A DNA stretch of 64,000 nt from Lepidodermella squamata (lineage: Eukaryota; Animalia; Gastrotricha). The position numbers and the translations under genes were made by a program. The notes beneath the pieces were generated by a model. It saw only the letters and a program-made list of their open reading frames with translations, was not told where the DNA came from and did not search any database. The stretch covers positions 1,116,001-1,180,000 of the forward strand of contig JBLDXI010000034.1 in the NCBI GenBank assembly GCA_047495785.1. Reading direction: 5' to 3'. Shown piece after piece: positions 1,338 through 58,490 of the stretch (within the stretch, counting starts at the first letter, position 1; the number at the start of each line of letters is the position of its first letter).

Positions 1338-1768
1338 GAAGTATCAAAGCTGTCTGAGCTCTTCTGGATTTCATAGAGAGCGGAACGATTTTTGCTTATT
1401 TGATTTTAAACGTAAAGGGAATCATTAAAATGCTGCCAAATATTTTATCTTTCACAGAGGCGAAATTCTACGGCGAAAGGGCAAGAATGCACATCTCACT
1501 ACTTGCATCTATTTGTATATGTATATGACTGAGCTTCTCTTCCTTGGCAGTTTTCAACCATCGTTTTTGTTCCAATAAAAAATCGAAGCAAAACAAAGCA
1601 AATAATTGAAATTTATGATTGCGATGAACAGCAAAATTTAAGCGAACTAGCGTGTGCCCCTGAAAACTCGCCCCAATCGCACAGGAAATTAAAGTACAAC
1701 ACATAGCTGGTGAGATATCTCTCGCCAGAGTGTTTAATTTTTCGCGAGAACGATCCTTGGTTTTTGCC

Positions 1769-13478: not shown

Positions 13479-14182
13479 AGCACTGGGCATGAAATAAAGC
13501 CTAGGAACACACGCAGCAAGTGAAAAGCTAAAGCTTGTCATCCGTAGCATGCTTCCGCTTCTGCCACAACATGTGGCGGAAAACGACCTTTTCTATCAGA
13601 TTCATTGGTATGAACTTCATGGGTATGAGCATGAACCATAAATCATAAAAGATTAAGGAGAAAAATCATCGAAAGCCTAATTTTCTCCGACTCTTTGCGG
13701 CATATTGCGATTATTTACAGTGCGCAATTCGTGGTGCCTCAAACTAGGGCATCCGATTTTTTTCCGATTTTTCCCGGCCAAGCCCTGGGGTAGATTATAG
13801 GTAATTAAAATTGCCATGAACCCTAGTAATTGGGCAATTAGCAATTATCTGGTCCATAGTTTAGGTGCCATCTTTTCTAGAAATGCAGACAATTTAGCGG
13901 TTGAACATTTCTGAAAAAAATCGACGTTTTCACACATTTAGTCAACTGCATTTATATCAAAATCGATCAAAATTGATCAAATCAAAAAAATTGACTCTTT
14001 CCAATAGAAAGCAAACAAATGCAATTTATGATTGTGATTCGACAGTAAAACTTATCGGAACGAATGTTTGCCCCTGAAAGCTCGCTCCAATCGCACAGGA
14101 AATTAAAGTACAACACATAGCTGGTGAGATATCTCTCGCCAGAGTGTTTAATTTTTCGCGGGAACGATCCTTGGTTTTTGCT

Positions 14183-17100
14183 ATGAATTGCAGCTTGATT
14201 TTTGTAGTCTTTTGTGTAGTTGCGTGCACTACCTGCTTGGATGTTTCAAAGCTTCAGCTGCCACGCTTGGACGAACTGATCGCATTCTGGCCTATGGACG
14301 CATACTCCGGTCTTAATGGGTACACGCGAACAAACAAAGAGCTTCAACCCCTTCGATCAAACAGCACAGCTAAATTTCGCCGGAACAATGTGGGAAATAC
14401 TGGTTACTACGTGATAAAAGAAGCGAGACTAGCAAGTTATTTGGCACCTGAGATTCCCAGCTCTTTCACGGTTTCCTTTCATGCTGATAGCAATATCGGC
14501 GAAAGCTTTCGGATTGTATTCGAGGGCTTATTTGAGATCACGGACTACATGGACACCACTGACATTCGTCTGAGAACAGGGCCAAATAGTTGGAATTTGG
14601 CTGAACGGCATCGAATTGAAGATACGAATAAGATTGATGGCCGAATGGTAACTGTCGCCTACGACAAGCAGTCGAACATTGCTACTTTCTATCGAATATG
14701 TAATATAAATCACAAACTGTCAAGCGAAAATTTCACATTCAGAGCGAGAATAAACAATAATCAGACATCAGGAGAATTCGTCATTGGCGAAAGGGACGAT
14801 GATATAGCGAAGGAGCGTCAAATATCTTGTGTCTCACTTTACAAAACCGCCTTGACAGAGGCTGAAGTTAAGGAGTTGTTTCTCACGCCTTGCCGGAATG
14901 CTTTCAAGATATCAATGGGCGAAATCGACGGAATAGACATGACGGAGATCCCACGACGGAAGAATCTCATCGGATTTTGGCCGCTTTCTTTTGATTCGAA
15001 CCTGCTCGGCTGGGACGGAGCTGGTAACGTCATCGTGCCTCGCCAGCCCAGTTCTTACAGCGCGAAGCAGGAGAAGTTTGAAGGGCCATATGCGCAAGGC
15101 AGTGTTTCGATGAACCTACCCGACCCAAGACGTAATTTAGCTGGTGGTTTGGTGGCTTACGACGGCCTGCCAAGACCACTCTCTCATTTCACACTCGCGT
15201 TCTACATGAAATCTTCGACTTGCGGTACTGATGGGCACGGTGTTCTCACCATTCTAGGTTTCCTTACCGTTTATTGCCCTCCGAAGTACTCTAGCCCATA
15301 TCCTTATGTCAAATTCGATTATTTAAAAACCGGATTGTCGCTGACAGAATTCGAGTCGGGACCTTTTTCCATTAAATATGAGCACATCGGAACGTGGAGT
15401 TTCTTTGCTATTGTTAGGAACGCTTTTAAAAGACACACCACGCTACACTCGCTTGCAGTCAACCACGATCTTGAACTCACTTCAGAGGGTGGGTTCATGT
15501 TTTCAAATCAATTAGCATAAAACTCATGGGTAAAACAAACCCATGTTTATTTGCCTACGTTTGGTTTCTTAATATTCCTAACTACAAGCCCAGGTGGCAC
15601 TACAATGAAGATCAAAGACCGGCAAAGAGGTGCCGCTTGGGCTTGTAGTTCACCCATGAGATTTACAGTAGTACAGTGTGTATTACGCAGCATTTCCGTC
15701 CGATTTTTTTATCTATTTGTTGGTTTTCTGAACGTGAATTTATCAATTTCAATTTCGTGAAATCTAACATCCATTATACATTTTCTGTAGAGCTCGACAT
15801 ATTCCTTAGACAGCCTCCGATTGAAGACCAATGGATAGAAAACCTTTCGCTGGAAATAGGAATTGGCTATATGAGCGGCTACAATAATTTTCATCGTCAT
15901 CAAGACCCGCAATTTGCTTGTTTATATTTCTACGACACAGCATTGAACGCTGACGAAGTTTTCAACTTGAGCAACGCATGTGGCCGGCTTGTTTCCCAGA
16001 ATAAAACCTATTCAAATGGCAACTCCATCGCTGAGCGAATGATACCAGTCTTCGAAACCCCACGATACAATCACATTGACAACATGACAGCTATTCAGCG
16101 TAAATGTGGCTATTTTAACGCTTCAGTCTACGTTCCTCGAAGTTACGAATCTTTATCAACTTACGGTGCTCCTCTAAAGGTGAAGGTTGGCTTTCAAGTA
16201 TCTGGTTTGAATGAAATTGATACAGTTAACGAAATCATAACCGTGAAAGCGCTGATGGTTCTTTATTGGCGAGTCAATACATGCCCTTGGTTTTCGTCGC
16301 CCGCTCTTCCAACTGGCAGAAACTTTGAGACCATTCACATCGACAATCTCAGCAATTTATGGCTACCGAGGATCCGCTTTCTATCAGCAGCCAACTCAAA
16401 CCTCCAGATGCGAAACATGATAATCAATGACGATTATTTGATGATGATGTCTTCAAAGGTACCAACAATTAACCGGACATTCGAATTTTATTGGTTAAAA
16501 GAAGGCCTATTCGAGGCAACCTGCGAGCTATCCCTACAGTTGTTTCCATTCGACACTCAAACTTGCAGCTTCGAATTTTCCCTCGAGCGAGACATTGACC
16601 TTGTTCGGTTTGATGAGAAAACCCTTCTATTCGATTTCAAAAATTCTTTATCCGGGGATAGCTGGACCTTAGTCTCGACCAATAAATCGACAGATCAGGT
16701 TTTCTACAAGGGATTCTACGTATCAACATTCAAATTTACGGCGGAGCTGCGGAGAATTCCGTGGTATTTCGTAAAGAATTTCGCGATTCCATCATCGACC
16801 CTTGCCTCCCTAAATTTGGTTTTATTGTTGATGCCACCAGATGCACCTGATCGAGCTGCTTTTTCTGTCACGATTCTTCTAACCATGACTGTCATGCAGA
16901 GTGCAATTTTGAATCAAGTTCCGAAAAAGCCCTATGACACTCTTCTCGGCAAGCTGGTTCAGGGTCTGACTTGGTTTTGCATCGCAGCGACCATCTACAG
17001 CCTGCTTATTTTATGGGCTGGTGCTTCCTTTTATGATCCAAATGCTCCGAACAGGTCTCAAATGCGGTTCCTGAATGGGAGAATTGGCTTGGTTCGTGCT

Positions 17101-17220
17101 ATTGATTTCTCCTTTTTGATATGCGGTATTATAGTATTCTTCCTTGTTCATATTTTACTTCTCCATGACAAAGATGTAGACCACAATTTTGTGATACAAT
17201 CATTCAATATGATCGACTGA
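14183..17220 (+). CDS. 2x LamG/ConA-like + Cys-loop pLGIC subunit, copy 2; join(14183..15488,15791..17220), ~911 aa
   Basis: Same architecture and phase-1 intron (G|GTGGGT...TTTTCTGTAG|AG). Cys-loop CELSLQLFPFDTQTC; M2 region PPDAPDRAAFSVTILLTMTV. Confidence 0.9.
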
Positions 17221-18595: not shown

Positions 18596-19972
18596 CTATA
18601 GCATTTCTTTCAAAATGTCCGCAAAAATCACTGCGAAACGGTGAACGTCGATAAATGAACAGTAAAGCGGTGCCATTGAAACCCTGACGATGTCAGGAGA
18701 CCTTATATCGCAGAGAACACCTCGATTTTCCAGAGCATCACCCAAGCCAGCAACACCTGGTGGGGTTGGAATTCGAATCGACAGCTGGTTTCCTCGTCTT
18801 GCCGGGTCTCGAGGGGTCACAATTGCCAACTCATGCAATTTATTTCGAATTTCCGAGAATAAGTCAGATTTCTCGACAAGCCACTCGAGGTAGCCAGTCA
18901 GCAAAATCGATTTGTTGCGTAAACGATCAAACCCAGCTTCGTTGAACATTTCAAGACTAGCGGCTAAGGTCTTGATAAGAATAGCGTTTTGATGGCCAGT
19001 TTTCCAACCTTTCGCGCCAATATCGCAGTCGAAATTGTTGGTCATAGCGAAACGAGTGTCCGGTTTATGAGCCATCCAGCCTAAGAGATGCAGCCGCTTG
19101 AAGTGGCGCTCATTGACATAACAGAACCCGACTGCACCTGGACCGCCATTCAAGTACTTGTAGCCAACACCACAGGCGAAATCGACATTCCATTTGCTGA
19201 GCTGGAGCGGAACACTTCCAGCTGCATGGGATAAGTCGAACCCTACAAATGCTCCAATATCATGGCCAGCCTTTACGATAGCTTCCAAGTCGAAAAATTG
19301 GCCAGTTCTGAACGGAACAGCCGACATAAAAATCACAGCAATTTTCTCGCTCTCCTCATTAATCCTGCTCAAAATATCCTCAGTCCTTAGAATGTACTCA
19401 TTAGGACGAGGGTTCAGGAGGATCAGACCATCTTTCGCGTTGAAACCATGAAGCTCGATCTGGCTCTCCATAGCATATTGGTCAGTAGGGAACCCTGCCC
19501 CTTCAATCATCATTTTGTACCTACTGTCTGTCGGCCTGTAGAATGAGGATAGCAGTAGATGGATATTCGTTGTTTGATTGTTCATCGCGATGACTTCATC
19601 CGGTCGGCTGCCGAGAAGAGGAGCGAGCAATTCACTTGGTTCGTCATCACATGTTAACCAGCTGCGTTCCCCTTTGAAGTAAGCTGTTGCACCGCAATCT
19701 GACCACTTCTTGTATTCTTCGTCAGTAACTTTGACAGTTCTCTTTGACGCAAGGCCCAAAGACGCTGCGCTAAGATAGATGAATGAATCGTTCGAGTCGA
19801 CGTTGTCTCCTAATTTGCCTTGTAAAGACGCTACGGCTGAGCGTTTAGGGAAGTTGAATTCACCGCGAAATTGCGATAATTCGTCTTTAGAATCCAGATA
19901 AATCGCAGTTGATTCATCGCTCGATAACTCGACGCCGCTTTCAAGCATCATTTCTTTAAAAAGATTCGACAT
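18596..19972 (-). CDS. KYNU: Kynureninase-family PLP enzyme, intronless, 458 aa
   Basis: SLGL, EVIAMN..T.N.HLL..SFY.P, FPTD.YA, FDLSHAAG..PL.L..W.VDFA, YKYLNGGPG (PLP Lys), RGNQLS, R...APLY. Confidence 0.93.
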   Translation of the reverse strand: MSNLFKEMMLESGVELSSDESTAIYLDSKDELSQFRGEFNFPKRSAVASLQGKLGDNVDSNDSFIYLSAASLGLASKRTVKVTDEEYKKWSDCGATAYFKGERSWLTCDDEPSELLAPLLGSRPDEVIAMNNQTTNIHLLLSSFYRPTDSRYKMMIEGAGFPTDQYAMESQIELHGFNAKDGLILLNPRPNEYILRTEDILSRINEESEKIAVIFMSAVPFRTGQFFDLEAIVKAGHDIGAFVGFDLSHAAGSVPLQLSKWNVDFACGVGYKYLNGGPGAVGFCYVNERHFKRLHLLGWMAHKPDTRFAMTNNFDCDIGAKGWKTGHQNAILIKTLAASLEMFNEAGFDRLRNKSILLTGYLEWLVEKSDLFSEIRNKLHELAIVTPRDPARRGNQLSIRIPTPPGVAGLGDALENRGVLCDIRSPDIVRVSMAPLYCSFIDVHRFAVIFADILKEML

Positions 19973-20816: not shown

Positions 20817-23669
20817 ATGAGATGCAACATAAACTTGATAGTCTTATGTGTAGTCGCACGTACTAGCAGCTTGGATGTTTCAAAGCTTCAACTGCCACGC
20901 TTGGACAAACTGATCGCATTCTGGCCCATGGACGCATACTCCGGTCTATCAGGGTTCACGAAAACAAATACAGAGCTTCAACCGCTACGATCAAACAGCA
21001 CAGCTAAATTTCGTCGGGAAACTGCGGCGAATACTGGTTACTACGTGGCGAGAGGAACAATAATTGCGAGTTATTCGATGTCAGAAATTCCAAGTTCGTT
21101 CACAGTTTCCGTTCATGCTGATGGCACATTTGGCTCGATTGCATTCGATGGACTATTCAAGATAACGGACTACGTGTACAACAATGGCATTGAATTGAGA
21201 ACAGGGCCAAATAGCTGGTATCCCGTGGATCGGTTTCCCGTATCAGACAAGAATATCATCATGGATACCCGAATGGTAGCTGTCACTTACAACAAGCAGT
21301 CGAACACCGTTGTTTTCTATCGAATAAGCAATAAAGATCACAAACTGTCAATCGAAAATGTCACAACTGGGGCTGAAATCTACACGAATGACACGTCGCG
21401 AGAATTTGTGATTGGAGAAAGGAACGAAGGAACGAAGGAGAATCAAGTATCCTGCGTTTCATTTTACAAAGCTGCCCTAACAGAGGTTGAAGTGAAGGCG
21501 TTGTTTCTCACGCCATGCCGGAACGCTTTTAAGCTGAAGATGGGCAGAATCGATGCGATAGGCATGGCTGAGATCCCACGCCGGGAGAACCTCATCGGAT
21601 TTTGGCCACTTTCCATTGATTCGAAACTACTCGGCTGGGACGGAGCTGGTAACGTCATCGCGCCTCGCCAGCCTAGCGCTTACATCGCGAATGCGATGAA
21701 ATTTGAAGGGCCGTATGCACAGGGGAGTGTTTCGTTGAACGTACCCGACCCCAAGCGTAACAGAGCTTGTGGTTTGGTGGCTTACGACGGCCTGCCGAGA
21801 CCGCGATCTCATTTCACACTTGCGTTCTACATGAAACCACCTTGGTTTTCTAACCGTTTTCTGTCCTATCGGAAGTTCCGAACCAACTGTAAAGTTCGAT
21901 CATATTACTTCGGGATTATCGCTGACAGATTTTGTTGGATCGCCATTTTCTGTTGAGTATAAGCACGTCGGAGCATGGACTTTCTTTGCGATTGCTTCTA
22001 ACACTGTTGATAAAATCTCTACGCTACACTCACTTGCGGTCAACTACGCATTGGACCTTACATCACACGGTGCGTTCTTTTTTCAATCTTTTCGACCCTC
22101 AAATTCGAATGGGCAAAGAGCTAGAGGGGAAATAAAAGGGCTAAAGAGGTGGAAAGTGGAAAAATGGAAAGGATGTCCCTTTTTATTTCCTCGGTTTTCA
22201 TCTATGTACATGATTTCACACTTTCCCCCAGAAGTTTACGCATCCGTCAAGGAGCGTCCAATCGATGGCGAATGGATAGACAAGCTTTCGATGGAAATAG
22301 GCATTGGCTATGCGATGGACCGCAATGATTGGTATCGACATAAAGACACGCAATTTGCTTGTTTTTATTTCTACAACGTTGCGTTGAGCACAAAAGAAAT
22401 ATTCAACCTAAGCAACGCATGTGGCCGGCTTGTTTCCCAGAATACAACATATTCAAGTGGCAACTCAATCGCTGAGCGAATGATACCAGTCTTTGAGATC
22501 CCGCAATACGATCACATCGACAACATGACAGCCATTCAACAAAAATGTGGCTACTTCAACGCTTCAGTCTACGCTCCCCGAAGTTTTGAAACTTCATCAA
22601 ACCAATACGTTCCTCTCAAGGTGCAAGTAGGCTTTCAAGTTACGGGGCTGAACGATATAGACACAGTTAACGAAATCATCACTGTTAAAGCGCTAATGGT
22701 CCTGTATTGGCGAGTAAACACGTGCCCTTGGGTTTCTTCACCCGCACTTCCAACTGGTATAAGCTTTGAGACCATTTACATCGACAATCTCAGTAATTTA
22801 TGGCTGCCTAAAATCCGATTTCTATCCGCAGCCAACTCAAACCTTCAGATGCGCAACATGGCTATCAATGACGATTATTTGATGATGATGTCATCAAAGG
22901 TTCCAACTAAATAATCGAACATTCGACTTTTACTGGCAGAAGGAAGGCTTATTTGAGGCAAGCTGCGAGCTATCCCTACAGTTGTTTCCATTTGACATCC
23001 AAAATTGTAGTTTCGAATTTCGAATTTTCCCTTGAGCGCGACGTCCACCTTGTGTTTGCGGATAATAAGTCCTTATTATTCGATTTCAAGCATTCATTAT
23101 CCGGGAACAGCTGGACCTTAGTCTCGACCAACAATTCGACTGATCAAGTTTTCTACAAAGGCTTCTACGTTTCAACTTTCAAATTTACAGCAGTGCTACG
23201 GAGGAATCCGTGGTATTACGTAAAGAATTTCACAATTCCATCATCGACCCTCGCCTCGCTGAATTTGTTCTTATTGATGATGCCGCCAGATTTACCAGAT
23301 CGTGCAGCTTTTTCTGTCACGGTTCTTCTAACCATGACCGTCATGCAAAATGCAATTTTGAATGAAGTTCCGAAAAAACCTTATGATACTCTTCTCAGCA
23401 AGCTAGTTCAAGGTCTGACTTGGTTTTGCATCGCCGCGACTATTTACAGCCTGGTGATGTTGTGGATTGCTGCATCTTACTATGATCCAAACGCCTCAAT
23501 CAGACGTCAGAGAAAGTTCTTAAATGGGAGGATTGGTTTGATTCGTGTTATCGATTTCTACGTCTTCATATGTGGCGTTCTGATATTCTTGCTTGTCCAT
23601 ATTTTCCTTCTACGACACAGTGATTTAGACTATGATTATGTGTTAAAATCATTCAATATTATCGCTTAG
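20817..23669 (+). pseudogene. 2x LamG/ConA-like + Cys-loop pLGIC, copy 3, frameshifted (exons ~20817..22069 and 22232..23669)
   Basis: Colinear with the paralogs but has a frameshifting deletion of ~13 codons at ~21838, a +1 insertion creating TAA at ~22909-22914, and a 7-bp duplication (ttcgaat) at ~23012-23025. Confidence 0.85.
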
Positions 23670-24305
23670 TTGCTTTCACCGTTTTTACAGTCGCATGGGT
23701 CATCGACAGAAAGCTGACCTCTCTTTATGCTTAGTTTCGCTAATTCTGTCTCATTTTCATTCCAGTTCAAATAAAGTGGGGCGTTTAAGTGAAGAGTAAT
23801 TGAACAGAGACTCCATAAAATAGCAAATAATGATAAGGGTTCCGGAACTAGTAGAAGAAACTGATAAGAAATATGTGGCATCACGATGAGGAAGACAGCG
23901 CGTAGTAGTGGCCGTCCTTACGCGAGAGACAATAAAGGAGAATATTGGATGCCTTCCTGCTGATTTGCCTTCATCCGGTGCTGCCAGGTAGCTGGACGAG
24001 CGAGGACTATGCAGCTGATGCTTCGCTGAAAAATTTCATTCAGAAGTAAATGCAGGTGTGTGACAATATATCAATGTTGTAGCCGAGATCCGTCAGAGCC
24101 AGATATTCATCGATTCTATGTGCAAATAAATCGAATTCACAAGCAACATTTCATACTATACCTTTGCCGAACAACGTTTTGCCCCTGAACCACTAACACG
24201 CACGATTCAACATGGCATCACCGGAAATTAAACTGAAACATAGAGATGGTGAGATATCTGCTCTCGTCAGTGCTTTGTTTTCCCTTCAGGTTCTTGGTAG
24301 CAGTC

Positions 24306-27199
24306 ATGAATTGCGTCCTCATTTTCATGGTCTTTTATGTAGTCTCATCTACGAGCTGTTGGGACGTTTCGGATCTTCAATTGCCTCGCTTAGACAAACT
24401 GATCGCATTCTGGCCCATGGACGCATATTCCGGTCTTATTGGGTTCACAAGATCTAACAAAGAGCTTCATCCGCTGCCAACAAACAGCACAGCCACATTT
24501 CGCCGGAACAATGTTGCAAATACTGGTTACTACGTAACCAAAGACAAAAGAATCGCGAGTTATTTAGTACCGGTAATAACGAGTTCGTTCACGATATCTG
24601 TGCACTTTGATTACACGTTTGGCTCAGTTGTATTTGATGGCTTATTTAAGATGGTATTCGATGGCATTCATTTAAGAACAGGGCCAGATAGTTGGTATTT
24701 CGCCAAACAGGGCCCCTTGGCAGAGAAAAATGTAATGGATGGCCTAATGATGGCTGTCACCTACGACAATCCGTCTAACACGGCTTTTATCTATCGAATA
24801 AGTAACATAAACCACAAACTCTCAAGTAAAAATGTTACAATTCAAGATAAACTATACACTAATGGCACTTCGCGGGAACTACGGATTGGAGAAAGGCAAG
24901 AAAGAGTAGTTCAAGAGTATCAAGTATCCTGCGTTTCATTTTACAAAGTCGCCCTAACAGAGGCTGAGGTGAAAGCCTTGTTTCTCACGCCGTGCCGGAA
25001 CTCAGTCAAAGCTACGATAGGCGAAATCGATGGGATAGACATGACAGAGATCCCACGCCGGGAAAATCTCATCGGATTTTGGCCGCTTTCCTTTGATTCA
25101 AATCTACTCGGCTGGGACGGGGCTGGCAACGTCATCGTGCCTCGCCAACCCAGCTCATACAACACAAGGCGGATAAAATTTGAAGGACCCTATGCTCAAG
25201 GTAGCATTGCGCTGAACATAACGGTAAGGACAGTTAATCTAGCTGGTGGTTTGGTGGCTTACGACGACCTACCACGACCGCGATCTGGTTTCACGCTCGC
25301 ATTCTACATGAAATCTTCGGCATGCGGTTCGGAAGGGCACGGTGTTGCTACTATTCTCGGTTTCCTCAGTGTTTACTGTAATTCGAAACGTCCTCATATC
25401 ATGTTTGCTTCGATAAATAATAGAAAATCACTGACAGATTTTTATGCTGACAAATATCTGCACTATATTAATTATGAGCACATCGGAGATTGGACTTTTT
25501 TCGCCATCACTTCTGATGACCTTGAAACGAACTGCATGATACATTCACTTGCGGTCAACCACGCGCTCGAAATTACATCAGAGAAGAGTGAGTTTATTTA
25601 ATCGAAAATATACTCAACAATAACCTATACTTCAAAGAAGGAGGGAGGAATATCAGCTTGTTAGCTAATATTTGCTAACAAGCTTGTCGTCCGTCTAAAT
25701 CTAATTATCCATTTGCTCTATTTCAGACCAATTAAGCTTCCTCTTTTAGTAAGCATTATTATTTTTCGGTAGTTACTTGCATAATCTTCGGCGAGAAGTC
25801 AATTAATGCCAGTTTGACTGACCAACTTTCGATGGAAATAGGCATCGGTTACGAGAACGGTGAAACGGCGATGAAAAGTGAAGCCATGCAATTGGCTTGT
25901 TTCTACTTCTACAATGCTGCCCTGAGCCCTCAAGAAGTTTTCAACTTGAGCAACGCGTGTGGCCGAGTTGTCTCACAGCGCTTAATCTTCACGAGTGGCA
26001 ACTCTATCGCAGAGCAGATGGTACCAATCTTTGGAACCCCGCAATTCGACTACATCGACAACATGACAGCGATTCAGAGAAGATGTGGGCATTTCAACGC
26101 TTCAGTCTACGCACCTCGAAATTTCGAAAACTTGTCAAATTACGATGCTCCTCTCAAGGTACAAGTTGGCTTTCAAGTAACGGGATTGAATGAAATAGAC
26201 ACAGTTAACGAAATAATAACTGTAAAAGCTCTGATGGTTCTATATTGGCGAGTAAACACGTGCCCGTGGCTTTCCTCGCCCGCTCTCCCAACCGGTAGAA
26301 ACTTCGAGACCGTCTACGTCGACAATTCAAATAATCTTTGGCTACCAAAGATCCGCTTTCTATCCGCAGCAAACTCGAACCTACAAATGCGAAACATGAT
26401 CATAAATGACGATTACTTGATGATGATGTCTTCGAAGGTGCCTACAGTTAACCGAACATTCGACTTTTATTGGCGAAAAGAAGGCTTATTCGAGGCAAGC
26501 TGCGAGCTATCCCTACAGTTGTTTCCATTCGACACCCAAAACTGTAGTTTCGAATTTTCCCTTGAGCGCGACATCGACATTGTGCGAGTTGATGAGAAAT
26601 CTCTCCTTTTCGACTTTAAGCGTCCTCATTCTGGAGGCAGCTGGGCCACAATTTTCACAGAGAATTCTACCGGTCAAGTTTTCTATAGAGGCTTCTTCGT
26701 TTCAACATTCAAATTCACGGTCGTATTACGAAGGAATCCTTGGTATTACGTAAAGAATTTCGCTATTCCATCATCTACCCTCGCATCGCTGAATTTGTTC
26801 TTATTCATGATGCCGCCAGATGCACCAGACCGTGCTGCATTTTCCGTTACCGTCCTTCTAACCATGGCAGTTATGCAGAGCGCGATTTTGAACGAAGTTC
26901 CGAAAAAGCCTTATGACACTCTTCTCGGCAAGCTGGTTCACGGTCTGACTTGGTTTTGCATAGCAGCAACTATTTACAGCCTCGGAATTTTATGGATTGC
27001 TGCATCCTACCACGATCCGAATGCCTCAACCAGGCCTCAGAAGCGATTTCTTAATGCGAGAATCGGTATGGTTCGTCTTATCGACTTCTTCTTTCTTTTA
27101 TGCGCTATTCTGGTATTCTTTCTTGTTCATATTTTTCTTGTCCGTCATAAGGATATAGACCACGATTTTGTGATAAGATCATTCAATATTGCCGCCTGA
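24306..27199 (+). CDS. 2x LamG/ConA-like + Cys-loop pLGIC subunit, copy 4; join(24306..25587,25773..27199), ~902 aa
   Basis: Phase-1 intron A|GTGAGT...GGTAG|TT at the homologous position. Cys-loop CELSLQLFPFDTQNC and four TMs. Confidence 0.88.
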
Positions 27200-30303: not shown

Positions 30304-30820
30304 TTTCGCAACAGATGTGTAATTTGGAAGTCCAAGACAGTAGTTGTCGTAGTTATAGAAGCGGTATATTACATATCCTGTGATATACTGGTAAATAAAC
30401 GCACAAGAAAGTGCGTGGGCAAATTATCAAATGAAAAAGGGTATAATGTTGGGTATTAAAGACTTAGAAAACAGCCGTTTATCTTTACACACGGTCGAGT
30501 TGCGTGTGAGTACCGCGGATATTGTGTTTAGTACTTCAGCTGCCGGTTGGCAAGTGCGTGTGGGATTAGCAGGTGATACAACATACTAACGGGCACCTAC
30601 GCATTACTCATGTGCAAAAAGAATACGATTTCCCTGAAACGCAAAGGGCGCAAAAATTTAAATTTCGAAATCGGGAAAATTATCTACAAATAAAAATATC
30701 CGGACAAAGTAGACTTTGCACTTAGGACAAAGCAAAGCCAGATAAAGAAAGCGGCACTTTTCTGGTCCAAAGATAAAACAACCCTGCAACAGAAAATTAG
30801 AACAATTCGCAACTCGTGTA

Positions 30821-32503
30821 ATGATGTCTTCTCCCCTTAAAAATTTTGAAGTGGACGCGCCAAAAGATTCCGAGCAACTGGCGTTTTTCAAAAATGTGGT
30901 TTGGCTTGTGGGACTGATATTAACCTTGATCATCGGAGCGGTCAACCTTCTGGCAGGAATATTCGGTCTGAAACTTATTGCCGTAATACTAATGCTCTTA
31001 CTTTGGACGTTTCATTCCAGCGATCTACTTGTTTTCGACTGACTTTGAGCCGATTAAGATGTTTTCAATGACGTACTTCCTATCGAACAAATTAACTTAC
31101 CATTTGTTAGCCGGTATAATGCTGACTATCTCCTGCTTGGGCGTTGTAGCTTTTTCGTTTGTTCCGATTGTTACATTACCACGTTTTCGTGGATCAAAGG
31201 CTAGGGCTATCGTTGGAACTGCATACTACACGTTGACGATTTTTCTTGCAACGCAATACTTCGTATATGGGTTGATGGGCCTGCTAATGGGCGGCACTTT
31301 ACCCCTCGAACATACCCTAAATGAAGAAGCGTCCGGGCAATACGGTTCAAATGGTTCATACCCCCTGTTGTTAGCGTACGGAAATGAAAACTACGGTTGC
31401 TGCGGGGTTTACGACCTCCCAAATGGCTGCGATCAGGATTACCCAGGGGCGGGAAATGGTTCTTGCAAAATTGGCAGTTTAGCGTGTTCAAAAGGCTGCT
31501 TGAGAGCAATTTACTCGAATGATGTTGAAAAGTTCCAGCTTCCGGTTCGCGTCTCGCTTTTCGTCCTTACTGCAACTTCGGTTGGCATAGTCGGATGGGG
31601 CTATTACTCTTACAAGGATGCAAAGCTGCTGAAATTAGCAACCGCCTTTCTCGGTGTGGTGAGTCAGCAAACTTACAGAAAAATAATCGTATTTTACTCG
31701 TATTTCTCGTTTCTGTCCGAAGCTTTCTGGATTTGTCAATACATGCGTTGGTTCCGCCTTAATATGCGGTGGTTTCGGCATATTCGCACAATATGCACCA
31801 GTTTTCGTTGATGTCAACCTATCGAAACTGAACGTTATTGGCTTAGTGCTGATATTATTCGGCATATTCACCATGTCTTACAATTTCGCCAGTCTTACTC
31901 AATTTTACTACGAAGAAAATGACGCTACTACGAGGAAAATTAAAATCGTCCGATACGCAGTAAGAATTTCATTCTAATAAGTATTCCCTTACTCACATTC
32001 CTTGAAGAGACTCGGACTAGCCAGCGTTGGCGTTCTGCCAATGCTCTCAGGCGCGATCTATGTATCCTCCAATCTAAATAAATCAACCCTGGAGGCTGCT
32101 TTGAATTCCGAGCTTGATCATTATCTACCGTTTGGCAGTTTGCTGCGAACTGCCAATCGTCGCTACGGATGCTGTGGTATCATCGGCAGTCAAGATGGGA
32201 TATGCACCCGCGACTTCCCAGGGGTGAATTGTACCTTGGGCAGTGCTAACTGCTCCACCGGCTGCTTGGATGATATGTGGTCGGGTCAGTTTTCGCATTA
32301 CCAGGGCCTTTTGATCGGCACTTGCATGGGGCTGTTCTTCTCTTTGGTATTTGAATCTACGTGGATTTACATGTGATTGCTTATCACAGTTTTTGTTTCA
32401 GTTTTGGATGATTGTCTTCATTCTGGTGTGCCCAATAGTGAAGCGGAAGTGTTGCAATAAGAAAAAGCCATATGAAACTTTGAAAGACGACGGGCAAAGC
32501 TAA
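30821..32503 (+). CDS. Double tetraspanin A (8 TM); join(30821..30965,31021..31658,31723..31959,32008..32346,32402..32503), ~486 aa
   Basis: Continuous spliced frame with 3 TM + CCG loop (6 Cys) + TM, twice. The tail KRKCC...YETL has juxtamembrane Cys and a YxxPhi motif. Confidence 0.85.
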
Positions 32504-32842
32504 ATTCCGATATTGTTCGAGCCAAAAAATATTCTATGGACATTAAGTCTGTGATTGCTCAACCCTGATGATCCCTATTGCTTTGTTTCGTTTTTTTCGC
32601 TATCAAAATAAATTCAATCAATTGTTTTACATTGTTAGCCATAAAACGCTAAGAACACTGTAATAGTTGCTTTTTGAGAGAACGAGGTTATTCATTATAA
32701 ACGGTATTATTCAGATACATTGAGGTGATTAATGAGGTGATTACACTAGATAAGACAAAAGTTCTCCACGGTTGCGACTTTTTTAGATAAGACAGCTACT
32801 TGCTATAGGAAACATTCATTCATAGCATAAATAGCTTCGAAA

Positions 32843-34490
32843 ATGTCATCACTTGAACGATTTGACGTAGACGTTCCCGCTGATTCTACTAAAATGTCGA
32901 ACCTCAAAAACGTAATTTGGCTCATCGGATTGGTATTTTCAATTATTTTTGGCCTGACCAATCTATTAACCGGAATATTCGGTCTGTAACTTCGTGAAAA
33001 CATGATTCGATGTATAAATTCAGCTTTCAGCTTTGTACTTGCATGGCAACGATTTCCAATCGATTAAGCAGTTTTCGATCACCTATTTTGAATCGAATGA
33101 GCTTACCTTTCGATTGTTCAATGGCATCATGCTGACTATCTCGATTTTCGCTGTCCTTACTTCTTGCCTATTACCAATCATGACTTTGTCCCACTTTCGA
33201 GATACAAAAATAAGATTTTACGGTGGAATCGTTTTCTACATGATGATGATTTTCCTCGCGTCGCAATATTTCGTCTTTGGCCTGACTGGTGTAATTATGG
33301 GAGGCACCTTACCTCTCGAGCATACCCTAAATGAAGAAGCTTCGGGCCAGTATGGTAATAACGGCAATTATTCTCTCTTGTTAGCATACGGTAACGAGAA
33401 ATTCGATTGCTGTGGGGTATACGACCTAGCTAAAGGCTGTGATCAGGATTATCCAGGGGTGGGCAATGAGTCCTGCAAAACAGGCAGTATGGCCTGCTCG
33501 AAAGGCTGTTTGAAGGCTATCTACTCCAATGTGGTAGTTCACTTCCAGAGCCCAGTCTATATGACCCTCTTCTTACTTGTCGGGAGTTCGATTGCAATCA
33601 TAGTCTGGGCGAGTTATTTCTATAAAGACGTGAAGCTGCTAAAATATGGCGGCTCCTTTCTCGGGGTGGTAAGTTACAACATTTTGACAGAATCTTAACT
33701 GAACATATTGTTCGCAGTTTTCGGGTATTGTAAACACTGCGGTTGGAACTGCCTTAATCGTAGGGGAATTCGGTATTTTCGCCCAATACGCTCCTGTCTA
33801 TGTCGAGGTCAATTTGTCGAAATTGAATACTATTGGAATTTCCCTGATTTTATTCGGAATTCTAAGCATACCATACAACCTCGCTACAGCTGCAATGTTT
33901 TACTACACTGGCGATGAGAGGAAACAAAAATTAATCCGATATCTGGTTTGATAATCACATTTTCCAACTTTTCTAATGAAAAATTCTTTTCAAAGAGAAT
34001 TGGTCTCGCTTTAGTAGGGTCTCTGCCAGTTTTCGTCGGTGCGATGTACATTTTCGTTGACGTGAGTGAATTGTCCCTGAATGACGCCCTAACAGCTGAG
34101 CTTGATCGCCCGATGCCTCTTGGAAGCTTGCTGCGAACCGCAAATCGACGTTTCGGATGTTGTGGCATCTACACCCGGGAGGATGGGATATGCACACGGG
34201 ACTATCCTGGAGTAAACTGCACATCAGGCAGCGCGAATTGCTTCACAGGTTGCCTGGACGACATGTGGTCACACCAGTTTTCGAATTACCAGGGTATTGT
34301 AATCGGAACTTTCATGGGCCTCTTCTCTTCTTTGGTAAATTTTCGAGTAGAATCTTGGACAGATTAAATTTTCTTTTTTTCTCAGTTTTTCATGGTCTTC
34401 TTTATCATCGGTATTCCGATTATCAAGAAGCGATGCTGCACTAAGAAGCCGCCATACGGGTCCTTGAATGACGACGAACAGAATGAATAA
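32843..34490 (+). CDS. Double tetraspanin B; join(32843..32981,33031..33668,33718..33945,33996..34334,34386..34490), ~482 aa
   Basis: Same exon structure as A. Loops FDCCGVYD...KGC and FGCCGIY...TGC; tail KKRCC...YGSL. Confidence 0.85.
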
Positions 34491-34763
34491 AAATATGTTG
34501 AAGATTATGATGAAATAAACTGGAACGCGTGTTTGACAGCCATTATCTCAGATATAGACGATTTTCGACTATGAAACTCGATTGGGTTTTTCTCCCTTCG
34601 TTTATCTGTAGCAAGTTTTTTTGTGACGTACTCAACGAGGTCCCTTATAAGCAGATAAGGTCTGCCAATTCGGAAATGCAGATAAGATACGCCTCTGCTG
34701 CTATCTCTCCGCAAATGTTAAGGCCAACAGGACCCATAGCTTCTTGAGGTATTTGTTCAAGCC

Positions 34764-36455
34764 ATGGAAGCCGTTAACGAGTCAAAATGTTTGAACTGGT
34801 GGAATTCGTTCAAGTCCTACTGCGGAGCCTCTTCAAACATAATGCTAGGGGTTAGTTGCTTCTAACATCATCAATCGATTTTCTCATTTTTTTCTGTTAG
34901 CTCTTCTCTATGGGATACCTCGGATTCTGTAAGTTCCATTTCAACTATGGAGTATTAGGAATTTTTAAGGATTTTTTCTTTTTAGCTGGTTTTCTAGTCG
35001 CGAACGATTACCAGCTTATCTATGATTTTTCGTTCACATTTTACGAGAGCAATTACTTGATTATCGATTTGGTCGTTACCTTTTCCTTGGTCCTCGCAAT
35101 CCTCGGCGTAATTTCAGCCTTGATTTTTCCGTTTTTTATGTTCCACGAGATGCATTCGCTACTATCTATCATCCATTACTCAATCATGCTGTTTTTGACC
35201 CTTGAATACTGGAGTTTGGCGATTGTAGCGATCTTCAAGCCTCAATTACTGCCACTAGAGCACACTTTGAACAAAGAAGCTGCCGGAATTTACGGCTTCT
35301 GGCCATCGCAATTGCTGAGAGTCGCAAACATGGAGTACGGCTGTTGCGGGGTCTACGATTTACCCCAGGGATGTGATCAACGCTACCCTGGCGAGAATCT
35401 AACTTCCTGCTTAGCTGGAAGCTTACTTTGCCAGAAAGGATGCTTAACAATCATTGACGAGAAAATGTTTGGCGGCTATCATCTCCTGGTCTATGTAATT
35501 CTATGGCTTCTGGCAATAACTTCAGTGAGTTCTTCCATTTTTCAACCACTGAAAGATGTTAAATTCGAATGTTTCAGGTTTTTGCTATAATATGGCGACC
35601 AAATGCGGATAAAATTTCGTTCATGTATGGCTGCGCCGGTGTTACTGTGGTATTTATTTCAAAATTCCTATCCCTTTGGAGTCTACATAATGTTGCCATA
35701 GATGTTCGGAATATTCTACGTCTGCTTGGGTGGAGGAATGATAGATACAAAATTCGGGATAATCAGAGAGTATGTGCCAACGTTTGTGGACGAGAATCGA
35801 TTGAGACTTCAAGGAATAGCCGCGGCCTTACTTCTTTACGGACTTTTCAATATCATTTACGGACTAGCATCAGCCGCAAAAATTTACTACGAAGGCGATA
35901 CTGCTAAGGAAAGGCTGGCTAATCGATTGGTTGGTTTGATTTATTCTTCTTTCGCATTTATTACTTCCAAAATTTTAAGATGCTCGTTTTTCTCGTAATA
36001 ATTCTCATAGTTGCCTGGTCTGCTGTGATACTATACAGCGTTGATCTGGGTAAATCTTCGTTAGAAGACACACTGAAACGGGAAGTCACCCAGAATACAA
36101 CAGATGGACTACTGGTTTATGCGAACAAAAGGTTCCAATGCTGTGGAATTCATAGTGAGACGAACGGGACTTGCCCACAAACTTATGAGGGCTTCAACTG
36201 CACGGTAGGCACCCAGTCTTGTAGCTACGGATGCTTGGACGTACTCTGGAAGGACCGATTCTACCCGTTTCAGTCAATGTGTGGGGCCTGGTTACTTGTT
36301 AACGCCCTTGGAGTAGTAAGTTGAATTTGTCATAATTATTTCGTATTACTTAAATTCATTCTACCCCACAGACTCTCATTATGATAGCAGTGTTTATTGT
36401 TCCCATGGTTTGCAATAGATTCAAAAAACAAGAAAGTTACATTCCTATTTCTTGA
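34764..36455 (+). CDS. Double tetraspanin C (7 exons)
   Basis: YGCCGVYDLPQGC...QKGC and FQCCGIH...YGC loops joined in frame through GT-AG introns; tail YIPI. Confidence 0.8.
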
Positions 36456-38185: not shown

Positions 38186-39011
38186 TTTGTCAACTTGTTT
38201 GGAATTTGATGAGATTGCGCACAAAAAGAAGCTTTGTGAATCGGCACTGATGACAAATGGTCTGTCCTATAATCTAAAATTTAATCTTTGCTTTCTATAT
38301 AATTTTCTTTTCAATAATTTCAATTGATGTGAATCGAACGAGACTCTGCCCGTAACGATCGTTTCGAATAAATTCAATTGGGCTTTATGATATGTTATCA
38401 AGATTCCATGAAGTACAGAAAGAAGCTGCAAAGCCTTGAGGATGGAAACTTGCATGTTTTTATAATTCTCAGACAAGCGAGCAACGTTTTCCCGGAGAAA
38501 ACACAGCCAGGCGTCAACGAAAGCAGCCTGTGCTATAAGACGAATCTTCAAGCTCAGACAGCCTTTTCCATGGGTCAAATTCTCGTTTCCACTTTTCATT
38601 TATACTCGACAAAGTTGAATTGAGCACGCGCACCCGCCACCCGTTGCTTTTTAGAACGTCGAATTTTGAAATCATGGCTGTTCAGGTACATTCCCAGATG
38701 TCTGATATCAAACAAGCGTGTTGATGTGTCGGATATGGCTCAAATTCTACTCTTAGGCAAAAAAGTCTAAGTTGTCGCGGAAAAAGTTGCGAATCACTTC
38801 CTTAGAATGCATTCCGGAAATTCATCTTATCATCAGGCAGAAGCTCGTTGTCGAGCGTGCAATCGGCAATCACGTGGACCCAGTTCTGACGGCTGTCATC
38901 AAGCGGCTGGACACGGAGTTCAGGGAAGCCAAGCAGTAGTACGAGTTTAGGCGGGAGTTCCGGTCAACCTTAGACAAGTCGAGGCCCTCTCTGCCCAACT
39001 GTGCTACCGGG

Positions 39012-42000
39012 AGGCCTGGGTCCGTCTGCGCAACCGGCACCAGCTGCCTCGATCGAATGGTCCGATAAAGCTGCCTGATGGTTCGGTTCTTCTCCTCTCG
39101 ACTGTCCTTGCCGACGAGCTGCTCAGCCCCTTTGTGGCTCCGATGCACCCCTACTGGTCAATTACCACTTTCGGCTCCGTTGCGTTTGCCACTGCCGCTA
39201 AGACCCAGCTTCGATGTCTTGAAGACCCAGCTTCGATGTCTTGATGTGCTTCAAAACAATTGTCTCAGAGCTATTCTGCATGTCCGCCTGGACGACCGCG
39301 TCCGTGTTTCCACTCTGGAGCTTCGCTGTCGCTTGCACTCGGAGGCTTCATGACCATGGTTAAAAATTATTCCCTCAATTACATTGTTCAATCTGTTTCC
39401 TTCGAATTTTTATTAAGTTTGAAGGGACGAAATTATCGACAGCGTAAGGTTTATCGGTTACAGGTTACAGGGAATCGTTAAGGTGAAGAGGAACGCTAGT
39501 GTGAAAAGGTGAGAAGACAGAAATCGACTTGAATCACGGCGGAATAGGAGACCACGGAAAATGAATTATAGGCGGACGTAACATAAACAGAAGGAAGAAA
39601 CGGAAAGAACAGAGGGTAAAAGGAAGATTGTAGCGGAGAGGAGAAGGAGCATAGGGATATTAGGTCACGAAGACAGGGAGCGGGCCCGACGACAGGCGGC
39701 TATGGAGGACGAATACTGGCGACTTCACTGTCGTTGAGGGATGTAAGCGGACGCCTTCGATTTGCTCGCGAAGTGGCAGCACATGTCTCCAGGAATTCTC
39801 GGCTTAGCGGACTTGAAGGCTGGGCAGGCGACAGCGCCGCTCGAGATCGGTGATGCGAACGCGGTCAGCTAGGCGAACGTTGAGCATAGCACGCATGCAC
39901 TTGTTCTGGAGGACGTCGAGGCGGCGCAATTGCTGTTTTGCTGCTGACGAAAAGACGACAAATGGTGTATGAACAATGGTTGCTAAGGGCGGGCAACAAG
40001 TAAAGTTAGCGCACCGCTCATGCATTTTTTACTTTGCAACTTTTCACACATTCTCGCGTGTGCCATCGACGTGAGACAGTTGGATAGTGGACAGTTGGAT
40101 GATTTTTTGTACGTACACCACTATCCTCCTTGACGACACACCTAACAACGGAATACAGCCTGCATAGGCCTGGGTCCGTCTGCGCAACCGGCACCAGCTG
40201 CCTCGATCGAATGGTCCGATAAAGCTGCCTGATGGTTCGGTTCTTCTCCTCTCGACTGTCCTTGCCGACGAGCTGCTCAGCCCCTTTGTGGCTCCGATGC
40301 ACCCCTACTGGTCAATTACCACTTTCGGCTCCGTTGCGTTTGCCACTGCCGCTAAGACCCAGCTTCGATGTCTTGAAGACCCAGCTTCGATGTCTTGATG
40401 TGCTTCAAAACAATTGTCTCAGAGCTATTCTGCATGTCCGCCTGGACGACCGCGTCCGTGTTTCCACTCTGGAGCTTCGCTGTCGCTTGCACTCGGAGGC
40501 TTCATGACCATGGTTAAAAATTATTCCCTCAATTACATTGTTCAATCTGTTTCCTTCGAATTTTTATTAAGTTTGAAGGGACGAAATTATCGACAGCGTA
40601 AGGTTTATCGGTTACAGGTTACAGGGAATCGTTAAGGTGAAGAGGAACGCTAGTGTGAAAAGGTGAGAAGACAGAAATCGACTTGAATCACGGCGGAATA
40701 GGAGACCACGGAAAATGAATTATAGGCGGACGTAACATAAACAGAAGGAAGAAACGGAAAGAACAGAGGGTAAAAGGAAGATTGTAGCGGAGAGGAGAAG
40801 GAGCATAGGGATATTAGGTCACGAAGACAGGGAGCGGGCCCGACGACAGGCGGCTATGGAGGACGAATACTGGCGACTTCACTGTCGTTGAGGGATGTAA
40901 GCGGACGCCTTCGATTTGCTCGCGAAGTGGCAGCACATGTCTCCAGGAATTCTCGGCTTAGCGGACTTGAAGGCTGGGCAGGCGACAGCGCCGCTCGAGA
41001 TCGGTGATGCGAACGCGGTCAGCTAGGCGAACGTTGAGCATAGCACGCATGCACTTGTTCTGGAGGACGTCGAGGCGGCGCAATTGCTGTTTTGCTGCTG
41101 ACGAAAAGACGACAAATGGTGTATGAACAATGGTTGCTAAGGGCGGGCAACAAGTAAAGTTAGCGCACCGCTCATGCATTTTTTACTTTGCAACTTTTCA
41201 CACATTCTCGCGTGTGCCATCGACGTGAGACAGTTGGATAGTGGACAGTTGGATGATTTTTTGTACGTACACCACTATCCTCCTTGACGACACACCTAAC
41301 AACGGAATACAGCCTGCATAGGCCTGGGTCCGTCTGCGCAACCGGCACCAGCTGCCTCGATCGAATGGTCCGATAAAGCTGCCTGATGGTTCGGTTCTTC
41401 TCCTCTCGACTGTCCTTGCCGACGAGCTGCTCAGCCCCTTTGTGGCTCCGATGCACCCCTACTGGTCAATTACCACTTTCGGCTCCGTTGCGTTTGCCAC
41501 TGCCGCTAAGACCCAGCTTCGATGTCTTGAAGACCCAGCTTCGATGTCTTGATGTGCTTCAAAACAATTGTCTCAGAGCTATTCTGCATGTCCGCCTGGA
41601 CGACCGCGTCCGTGTTTCCACTCTGGAGCTTCGCTGTCGCTTGCACTCGGAGGCTTCATGACCATGGTTAAAAATTATTCCCTCAATTACATTGTTCAAT
41701 CTGTTTCCTTCGAATTTTTATTAAGTTTGAAGGGACGAAATTATCGACAGCGTAAGGTTTATCGGTTACAGGTTACAGGGAATCGTTAAGGTGAAGAGGA
41801 ACGCTAGTGTGAAAAGGTGAGAAGACAGAAATCGACTTGAATCACGGCGGAATAGGAGACCACGGAAAATGAATTATAGGCGGACGTAACATAAACAGAA
41901 GGAAGAAACGGAAAGAACAGAGGGTAAAAGGAAGATTGTAGCGGAGAGGAGAAGGAGCATAGGGATATTAGGTCACGAAGACAGGGAGCGGGCCCGACGA

Positions 42001-43627
42001 CAGGCGGCTATGGAGGACGAATACTGGCGACTTCACTGTCGTTGAGGGATGTAAGCGGACGCCTTCGATTTGCTCGCGAAGTGGCAGCACATGTCTCCAG
42101 GAATTCTCGGCTTAGCGGACTTGAAGGCTGGGCAGGCGACAGCGCCGCTCGAGATCGGTGATGCGAACGCGGTCAGCTAGGCGAACGTTGAGCATAGCAC
42201 GCATGCACTTGTTCTGGAGGACGTCGAGGCGGCGCAATTGCTGTTTTGCTGCTGACGAAAAGACGACAAATGGTGTATGAACAATGGTTGCTAAGGGCGG
42301 GCAACAAGTAAAGTTAGCGCACCGCTCATGCATTTTTTACTTTGCAACTTTTCACACATTCTCGCGTGTGCCATCGACGTGAGACAGTTGGATAGTGGAC
42401 AGTTGGATGATTTTTTGTACGTACACCACTATCCTCCTTGACGACACACCTAACAACGGAATACAGCCTGCATAGGCCTGGGTCCGTCTGCGCAACCGGC
42501 ACCAGCTGCCTCGATCGAATGGTCCGATAAAGCTGCCTGATGGTTCGGTTCTTCTCCTCTCGACTGTCCTTGCCGACGAGCTGCTCAGCCCCTTTGTGGC
42601 TCCGATGCACCCCTACTGGTCAATTACCACTTTCGGCTCCGTTGCGTTTGCCACTGCCGCTAAGACCCAGCTTCGATGTCTTGAAGACCCAGCTTCGATG
42701 TCTTGATGTGCTTCAAAACAATTGTCTCAGAGCTATTCTGCATGTCCGCCTGGACGACCGCGTCCGTGTTTCCACTCTGGAGCTTCGCTGTCGCTTGCAC
42801 TCGGAGGCTTCATGACCATGGTTAAAAATTATTCCCTCAATTACATTGTTCAATCTGTTTCCTTCGAATTTTTATTAAGTTTGAAGGGACGAAATTATCG
42901 ACAGCGTAAGGTTTATCGGTTACAGGTTACAGGGAATCGTTAAGGTGAAGAGGAACGCTAGTGTGAAAAGGTGAGAAGACAGAAATCGACTTGAATCACG
43001 GCGGAATAGGAGACCACGGAAAATGAATTATAGGCGGACGTAACATAAACAGAAGGAAGAAACGGAAAGAACAGAGGGTAAAAGGAAGATTGTAGCGGAG
43101 AGGAGAAGGAGCATAGGGATATTAGGTCACGAAGACAGGGAGCGGGCCCGACGACAGGCGGCTATGGAGGACGAATACTGGCGACTTCACTGTCGTTGAG
43201 GGATGTAAGCGGACGCCTTCGATTTGCTCGCGAAGTGGCAGCACATGTCTCCAGGAATTCTCGGCTTAGCGGACTTGAAGGCTGGGCAGGCGACAGCGCC
43301 GCTCGAGATCGGTGATGCGAACGCGGTCAGCTAGGCGAACGTTGAGCATAGCACGCATGCACTTGTTCTGGAGGACGTCGAGGCGGCGCAATTGCTGTTT
43401 TGCTGCTGACGAAAAGACGACAAATGGTGTATGAACAATGGTTGCTAAGGGCGGGCAACAAGTAAAGTTAGCGCACCGCTCATGCATTTTTTACTTTGCA
43501 ACTTTTCACACATTCTCGCGTGTGCCATCGACGTGAGACAGTTGGATAGTGGACAGTTGGATGATTTTTTGTACGTACACCACTATCCTCCTTGACGACA
43601 CACCTAACAACGGAATACAGCCTGCAT
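39012..43627. repeat. Tandem array of four 1154-bp units
   Basis: Unit starts aggcctgggtccgtc at 39012, 40166, 41320 and 42474. The ORF track repeats at exact 1154 offsets and no differences were spotted by eye. Confidence 0.97.
39228..39935. mobile_element. Two convergent RTE-like LINE C-terminal fragments, repeated in each array unit
   Basis: Plus strand QLRCLDVLQNNCLRAILHVRLDDRV (~39228-39340) and minus strand QLRRLDVLQNKCMRAMLNVRLADRV (~39805-39935) resemble the post-RT CLR.IL...D.V motif. Confidence 0.65.
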
Positions 43628-58417: not shown

Positions 58418-58490
58418 TGGAGGATACGGGCGTCGATCCCGTTACCTCTCGCATGCTAAGCGAGCGCTCTACCATTTGAGCTAATCCCCC
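58418..58490 (-). tRNA. trnA-AGC: tRNA-Ala (anticodon AGC)
   Basis: GGGGGATTAGCTCAAATGGTAGAGCGCTCGCTTAGCATGCGAGAGGTAACGGGATCGACGCCCGTATCCTCCA. Acceptor stem has G3:U70; an oligo-T Pol III terminator follows immediately. Confidence 0.97.

Follow-up and report, generated by a model that had tools for sequence, protein, structure and literature searches.

Four paralogous genes of the gastrotrich Lepidodermella squamata, each predicted to encode two diverged tetraspanin units in a single eight-pass chain

Tetraspanins of the CD81, CD9 and CD53 type (PF00335) follow a plan of one unit per polypeptide, in which four transmembrane (TM) helices hold two outer loops, the first of them short, the second large and with a CCG motif and paired cysteines. 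How these proteins contact one another in the membrane is still disputed, since their pairs are weak and detergent-sensitive. In the photoreceptor disc dimers of PRPH2 and ROM1 (PDB 7zw1), a tetraspanin pair acts as one unit, formed by separate chains that are held by their outer loops; an extra cysteine serves for disulfides between chains, the second loop is very large and the C-terminal tail long. Here, we describe four genes (A to D) of the gastrotrich Lepidodermella squamata, found in a stretch of 64,000 nucleotides (nt) (GenBank assembly GCA_047495785.1, contig JBLDXI010000034.1, positions 1,116,001 to 1,180,000 of the forward strand), hereafter the window, in whose own numbering all positions are given. 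With a probability that we put at about 85 %, these are four real paralogous genes, each of which encodes an eight-pass protein in which two complete but diverged tetraspanin units follow one another (the N half, TM1-TM4, and the C half, TM5-TM8). They depart from the classical rule of one unit per polypeptide, as each of the four encodes two, which transcripts confirm for A, B and C.

The gene models were obtained by translating all frames and placing splice sites manually, intron 1 of gene A being positioned by homology with gene B. Introns in this region are short (~50 nt) with GT..AG ends, all introns of the four models are of this type, and each model yields a single open frame, with protein lengths of 486, 482, 457 and 476 amino acids (aa) for A, B, C and D, respectively. 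Three genes lie in tandem on the + strand: A at 30821-32503 (exons 30821-30965, 31021-31658, 31723-31959, 32008-32346 and 32402-32503), B at 32843-34490 (exons 32843-32981, 33031-33668, 33718-33945, 33996-34334 and 34386-34490) and C at 34764-36455 (exons 34764-34850, 34901-34928, 34986-35524, 35578-35649, 35702-35929, 35980-36315 and 36372-36455). Gene D is on the - strand at 62856-61100 (exons 62856-62773, 62719-62692, 62637-62093, 62043-61963, 61909-61682, 61615-61280 and 61228-61100), and no further copy of the family was found within the window. The original prediction, an earlier note on this DNA, had announced three tandem genes and a fourth at 61100-62856, and its outer coordinates equal those of our models to the base. 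The exon plan sorts the four genes into two types, A and B having five exons, and C and D having seven, with a 28-nt microexon (34901-34928 on the + strand in C, 62719-62692 on the - strand in D) and a small bridging exon in common; all four genes share introns located in the loop between TM6 and TM7 and within TM8.

What makes these genes unusual is the way in which the two halves are joined. In both A and B, exon 2 runs without a stop from just after TM1 through TM2-TM4 and a short turn into the first residues of TM5, as had been predicted, and the turn reads YKDAKLLK in A (31611-31634) and YKDVKLLK in B (33621-33644). As read from its sequence, exon 2 of gene A (31021-31658) carries TM2, TM3, the first CCG loop (CCG at 31392-31400), TM4, the turn and the start of TM5, and exon 4 (32008-32346) covers TM7 and the second CCG loop (CCG at 32170-32178) and then enters TM8. 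In C and D, the last part of TM4, the turn and the first part of TM5 sit together on the one small bridging exon, of 72 nt in C (35578-35649, turn RPNADKIS, with transcript joints on both sides) and 81 nt in D (62043-61963, - strand, again with a short turn). Across the four genes, the TM4-TM5 turn is 5-8 residues long, and the models contain neither a stop nor a usable start codon between the halves. In A, the first methionine that follows the turn sits inside TM6, so that the C half alone could not be translated as a four-pass protein.

Transcript evidence comes from a public sequencing run of 2015 (X1), which contains half of the sampled words of the region, a second run of 2024 (X2) containing the genomic form. 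X1 is a transcriptome because its contigs skip introns and one of them ends in a cDNA-amplification adapter. Eleven of the predicted joints are present in X1 contigs, each GT..AG, some after a one-base shift: 31658/31723, 31959/32008 and 32346/32402 in gene A, all four introns of gene B (32981/33031, 33668/33718, 33945/33996 and 34334/34386) and introns 3-6 of gene C (35524/35578, 35649/35702, 35929/35980 and 36315/36372). Of these, 35524/35578 reads one base off, which is attributed to a synonymous A/G difference at 35524, and what X1 shows of the microexon of gene C is a loose end at 34986. In three genes (A, B and C), individual contigs extend over the boundary between the halves. In gene A, one contig of 757 nt, which corresponds to 31385-31657, 31722-31959 and 32008-32253, spans the first cysteine loop, TM4, the turn, TM5, TM6 and TM7, and enters the second cysteine loop; in gene B, one contig passes from exon 2 into exon 3, and with it from TM4 through the turn into TM5, and in gene C, one contig of 431 nt spans exons 3-4-5-6. 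Transcripts that end or split between the halves had been named in advance as the observation that would speak against a single chain, and no joint separating the halves is among those listed for the X1 contigs. An adapter-marked contig end is at 32648, 36 nt past an AATAAA at 32607-32612, as would fit a 3' end that belongs to gene A alone. Two joints of the 'opposite strands' kind, at a low depth of 2.4, were also seen in X1 in exon 4 of gene A (32091-32233) and are probably assembly or cDNA chimeras.

The alternative that survives best, improbable as we judge it, accepts the fused gene and makes it a precursor, whose chain would be cut after translation, or of which a minor transcript would be used, to give four-pass tetraspanins at a fixed ratio of 1:1. 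The turn speaks against cutting on two counts. With its 5-8 residues, a predicted cytoplasmic location and membrane helices on both flanks, it would make a poor protease substrate, and its sequence differs between A/B and C/D (0/7 positions invariant), which argues against a conserved cleavage site. As for a minor transcript, alternative joints were not seen in X1. Less credible still is the idea that the doubles are an annotation illusion, in which adjacent four-pass genes, possibly cistrons of a spliced-leader operon, have been misjoined. It draws some support from relatives of these genes elsewhere (described below), which are single four-pass genes and can be in tandem (L007, L004), but it does not square with TM4 and the start of TM5 being in one exon without a stop in A/B and on one small exon in C/D, with the lack of an ATG that could start the C half before TM6, with the single contigs that cross the junction in three genes, or with the persistence of the arrangement in four paralogs that have saturated synonymous sites.

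We assign both halves to the tetraspanin superfamily, in which they would be a divergent loop type; the assignment comes from sequence profiles, with which the fold evidence agrees without deciding the matter. Searches, Pfam scans and folding all used exon pieces. On these pieces, PF00335 is the sole relevant Pfam family in both halves, with scores below Pfam's threshold (16-24 bits, E 3e-5 to 8e-3). The two halves are clearly related to each other (hhalign of the N-half against the C-half profile, probability 99.3 %, E 2.7e-20), and both align collinearly with a single tetraspanin, P0003, the C-half profile doing so on TM3, the large loop and the start of TM4 (99.2 %, E 2.5e-19). When the N-half profile, built from four exons, was searched against 1.84 billion representative proteins, it found six matches only, all of them fragments or single four-pass proteins, among which are P0001 (E 1.2e-13), P0002 (E 2.4e-12) and P0003 (E 1.2e-8). 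P0001 and P0002 are tetraspanin fragments above Pfam's tetraspanin threshold, and P0003 is a complete tetraspanin of 239 aa that scores 152 bits with PF00335 and matches CD81 (E 2.6e-28) and CD9 (E 4.4e-27). Profiles of the four paralogs alone gave only marginal matches in the PDB, whereas in a search with a 15-sequence profile the top 14 rows are tetraspanins (CD53 0.016, CD81 0.033, Sm-TSP-2 0.039), and the CCG, SC and GC cysteine landmarks align with those of Sm-TSP-2. Language-model features point the same way, 30/30 of the nearest named clusters carrying PF00335.

Models of exon pieces were compared with known structures, as the original prediction had proposed for CD81, CD53 and uroplakin. 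The AlphaFold model of exon 2 of gene A (the N half without TM1) has a predicted local distance difference test score (pLDDT) of 78; in it, TM3 runs on into a stalk helix, a 38-residue helix leads from the loop into TM4, as in tetraspanins, and the helix breaks exactly at the YKDAK turn. Foldseek found no significant match to this model in the PDB. In a second-look structural alignment, the top row is the open form of CD81 (7jic_B, Z 9.9, root-mean-square deviation 3.6 over 165 residues), residues 1-197 of the model being collinear with residues 29-226 of CD81, from just after TM1 to the end of TM4. In a wide structural search, PRPH2 (7zw1_A) gave by far the longest alignment (Z 8.2, 193/212 residues, 16 % identity). 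CD9 and CD53 scored Z 6.3 and 6.0 with this N-half model, and only CD81 and PRPH2 cover the whole of it. For the C half, the model of exon 6 of gene C (which does not include TM5-TM6) has a pLDDT of 87, and its only two Foldseek rows are CD53 and CD81, while the wide structural search with this hairpin returned generic helix hairpins only. A shape search of the ESM Atlas found nothing related. The notion that the units belong to some other four-pass family with a cysteine-rich loop, for which the Pfam scores below threshold, the non-significant Foldseek results and the empty ESM Atlas search could be invoked, is hardly tenable against a significant chain of profiles that leads to the 152-bit protein and from there to CD81 and CD9, cysteine landmarks shared with Sm-TSP-2, a PDB profile search headed by tetraspanins only, and CD81 and PRPH2 as the sole structural matches over the whole model.

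Each of the four proteins has eight hydrophobic segments in its hydropathy profile, arranged 4+4, and each contains the loop motif (LE..L..E, CCG, (Y/F)PG, C..G...C..GCL) twice, in keeping with the claim of two full units per chain. The eight large loops are 80-82 residues long and have exactly six cysteines each, with the CCG and four further cysteines invariant in all eight, at a spacing of CC-x8/9-C-x8/11-C-x6-C-x3-C. When segments are taken from the four-way alignment, lysine plus arginine have a density of 0.14-0.24 on the predicted inner side (N terminus, inner loops, turn, tail) versus 0.05-0.07 in the outer loops, and N-x-S/T sequons (6/6 in A, 4/4 in B) are in predicted outer loops. 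Each half is like the CD81 type in having four TM helices, two outer loops of which the first is short and the second large, with CCG and paired cysteines, stalk helices that in the model are continuous with TM3/TM4, sequons outside and basic residues inside, and the proteins are unlike it in having two units per chain, eight TM helices and a compact second loop (~82 aa) with a cysteine spacing of its own. They share with PRPH2 and ROM1 the proposed behaviour of a tetraspanin pair as one unit, but the link would be a peptide on the cytoplasmic side, the ~82-aa loops have an even six cysteines (no unpaired seventh) and the tails are of 14-26 aa only. Tetraspanin TM helices have conserved polar residues (Asn in TM1, Glu/Gln in TM3), which are partly kept here: in the N half, there is an Asn before W..G in TM1 of A/B and a Gln (A, B) or Glu (C, D) in TM3, while in the C half there is an Asn in TM5 of A and B and none in TM7. 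The tails of A and B have a juxtamembrane CC, which suggests palmitoylation, and an aligned tyrosine is found in the tails of all four proteins (YETL in A, YGSL in B, YIPI in C, YGGT in D). The tail motifs of the YxxPhi type that had been reported for A-C are therefore present, D keeping the tyrosine without the full motif, and the motif suggests adaptor-mediated endocytic or lysosomal sorting.

How old is this arrangement? Whole-protein identity is 62 % between A and B, 39 % between C and D, and 29-33 % between A or B and C or D; identity is 31-61 % among N halves, 27-63 % among C halves and only 19-25 % between N and C halves. A maximum-likelihood tree that includes outside relatives places all N halves in one group (support 99/99) and all C halves in another (89/91), with A+B at 100 in both and matching internal branching in the two groups. 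Separate N and C groups with parallel branching imply that the fusion preceded the gene duplications, and thus the split between A/B and C/D. Among the paralogs, synonymous sites are saturated (proportion of synonymous differences, pS, 0.75-0.85), and for the A/B pair the nonsynonymous counterpart, pN, amounts to 0.23 (N half) and 0.22 (C half), versus a pS of 0.75 in both. The saturation and the parallel branching mark the fusion as old, with constraint on both halves, which are under long-standing and equal purifying selection. With both halves kept in four paralogs, a pN far below pS and joints seen in transcripts, chance is excluded as the source of the architecture, and the junction transcripts, the profiles and the tree together bear out what had been claimed, that is, a single chain with two units, old and since split into A/B and C/D subtypes. 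The constraint is unevenly spread along the chain, in a way that reverses what is usual for tetraspanin paralogs, in which TM helices are best conserved and outer loops least. In A-D, conservation peaks in the outer loops, where 33/82 and 24/82 positions are invariant, and is lowest in the TM helices (0-6 invariant positions in each), with 0/7 in the turn.

Several points weigh against reading A-D as double tetraspanins. Support from transcripts is limited to gene A beyond its first 470 nt and to B and C, and the evidence for a single chain is at the level of transcripts. The best PF00335 score on any exon piece is 24.2 bits, versus a gathering score of 32.1; the models match the folds of CD81 and PRPH2 only moderately (Z 8-10), generic helix bundles reach Z ~10 on ~90 residues in the wide structural search, as high as CD81, and Foldseek E-values are not significant for either half (E 1 and 7 for the C half). 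Finally, the double architecture was not found in other species in searches of protein representatives and metagenomes, which carries little weight since these collections are poor in spliced animal genes.

The nearest relatives, P0001-P0006 (loci L004, L007 and L008), come from ENA or Logan assemblies of eukaryotes. They have the same CCG...C.QDYP...C..GS..C..GC loop as A-D, but four TM helices each, and none is fused, their contigs carrying single tetraspanin genes with their own start and stop. At L007, two such genes (574-1362 and 1806-2491) are head to tail on one strand, 440 nt apart, a tandem pair that by analogy is plausible as the kind of state from which a fusion could start; the first of them has a His-rich tail end. 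Other searches returned nothing: neither JGI metagenome scans with the N-half and C-half profiles, nor a homologue search with a 272-aa stop-free stretch over exon 2 of gene A (candidates of 150-476 aa), which did not even recover C or D, so that the proteins of this genome are evidently absent from that collection. In a full-text search of the literature, no characterised natural double, tandem, fused or eight-TM tetraspanin was found, in line with the statement of the original prediction that there is no characterised equivalent. This statement has to be softened by a one-line mention, in a bioRxiv preprint, of an uncharacterised, stramenopile-specific eight-TM protein (10.1101/2024.02.19.579948), which that line calls tetraspanin-like, the idea of a doubled or extended tetraspanin having thus already been noted. 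That protein belongs to algae and their relatives, not to animals; it can be compared with A-D by description only, and the text makes no mention of two complete units or of two CCG loops. An independent origin of the stramenopile protein and of A-D is very likely.

The rest of the window has a varied content. Around the tetraspanin genes, acceptor-like AG sites are found 2-25 nt 5' of the ATG in A, B and C (30800-30820, 32815-32842 and 34745-34763), the intergenic gaps A-B and B-C are short (340 and 274 bp), and to judge from these features the three genes might receive a spliced leader or form an operon. Upstream of them on the + strand is a loose tandem array of long, apparently intron-poor open reading frames (ORFs) for Cys-loop ligand-gated ion channels (Neur_chan_LBD and Neur_chan_memb) at 4179-5549, 15676-17220, 25814-27199 and 22051-23669 (two ORFs), and ORFs of similar size at 1730-3166, 14144-15520 and 24246-25601 have no Pfam match. 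Within this array is a retroelement, represented by a reverse-transcriptase ORF at 11844-13148 on the - strand (RVT_1, E 9e-26). At 18596-19972 on the - strand, a single ORF of 458 aa with class-V aminotransferase and kynureninase C-terminal domains is likely an intronless kynureninase gene. A neighbourhood shared with L004 (tetraspanin, Cys-loop channel, class-V aminotransferase) was considered and rejected, the aminotransferases not being orthologous (30 % identity over 90 aa). Further downstream, a G+C-rich tandem repeat at ~38900-43300, with a period of 1154 bp and ~4 copies, has no Pfam or Rfam match and shows identical stop-free stretches at 39069, 40223, 41377 and 42531. A long gene at ~53760-57700 (+ strand, G+C 0.5, strong negative GC skew) encodes many copies of a Thr/Pro-rich unit, PVTNPG..VTNDAGTTITQPPSTVT.P.G.PVTNP.., and its product looks like a mucin-type secreted or surface protein. 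A tRNA-Ala (AGC) gene is at 58418-58490 on the - strand, 2.6 kb from gene D.

As for how double tetraspanins arose, two adjacent single tetraspanin genes, or one gene and its tandem duplicate, are likely to have fused by losing a stop, a start and the spacer between them, at a time when the A/B and C/D types had not yet separated. There are precedents for this logic in two-pore-domain K+ channels and two-pore channels, which are covalently doubled subunits of otherwise non-covalent oligomers, with a fixed stoichiometry and halves that are free to diverge; these families are unrelated to A-D, and the likeness is in evolutionary logic only. In the protein, the N terminus, both small inner loops, the TM4-TM5 turn and the C-terminal tail would be cytoplasmic, and the two loops of ~82 residues, each of them with sequons and with six cysteines that presumably pair into three disulfides, would stand side by side outside. 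The short turn would keep TM4 beside TM5, with the two four-helix units parallel and their heads adjacent, the result being a pre-assembled tetraspanin hetero-pair of fixed stoichiometry. Such a pair could (i) scaffold membrane microdomains or partner proteins, or (ii) shape the membrane, as loose tetraspanin pairs do, although any particular cellular role that one might assign to it is doubtful. Because the outer heads are the most conserved parts, the two together probably form a composite surface for a conserved outside partner, or one for head-to-head contact. In its most ambitious form, which we put forward as tentative, the proposal is that A-D are a lineage-specific, obligate eight-pass hetero-pair, in which the peptide link and the co-conserved heads record the physiological tetraspanin-tetraspanin interface and create a composite binding site beyond the reach of any single tetraspanin, and which would be the first natural 'tandem dimer' of the superfamily in animals.

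In conclusion, these genes represent a novelty of domain architecture in a barely studied animal, the reach of which is moderate. For tetraspanin biology, they could be of use in two ways. First, a turn of 5-8 residues fixes which helices are neighbours (TM4 and the next TM1) and sets the stoichiometry at 1:1, and a double tetraspanin should for these reasons be a stable object for structure determination. Second, it is in the heads that these four old paralogs are most conserved, which points to a shared outside partner that would be worth finding.

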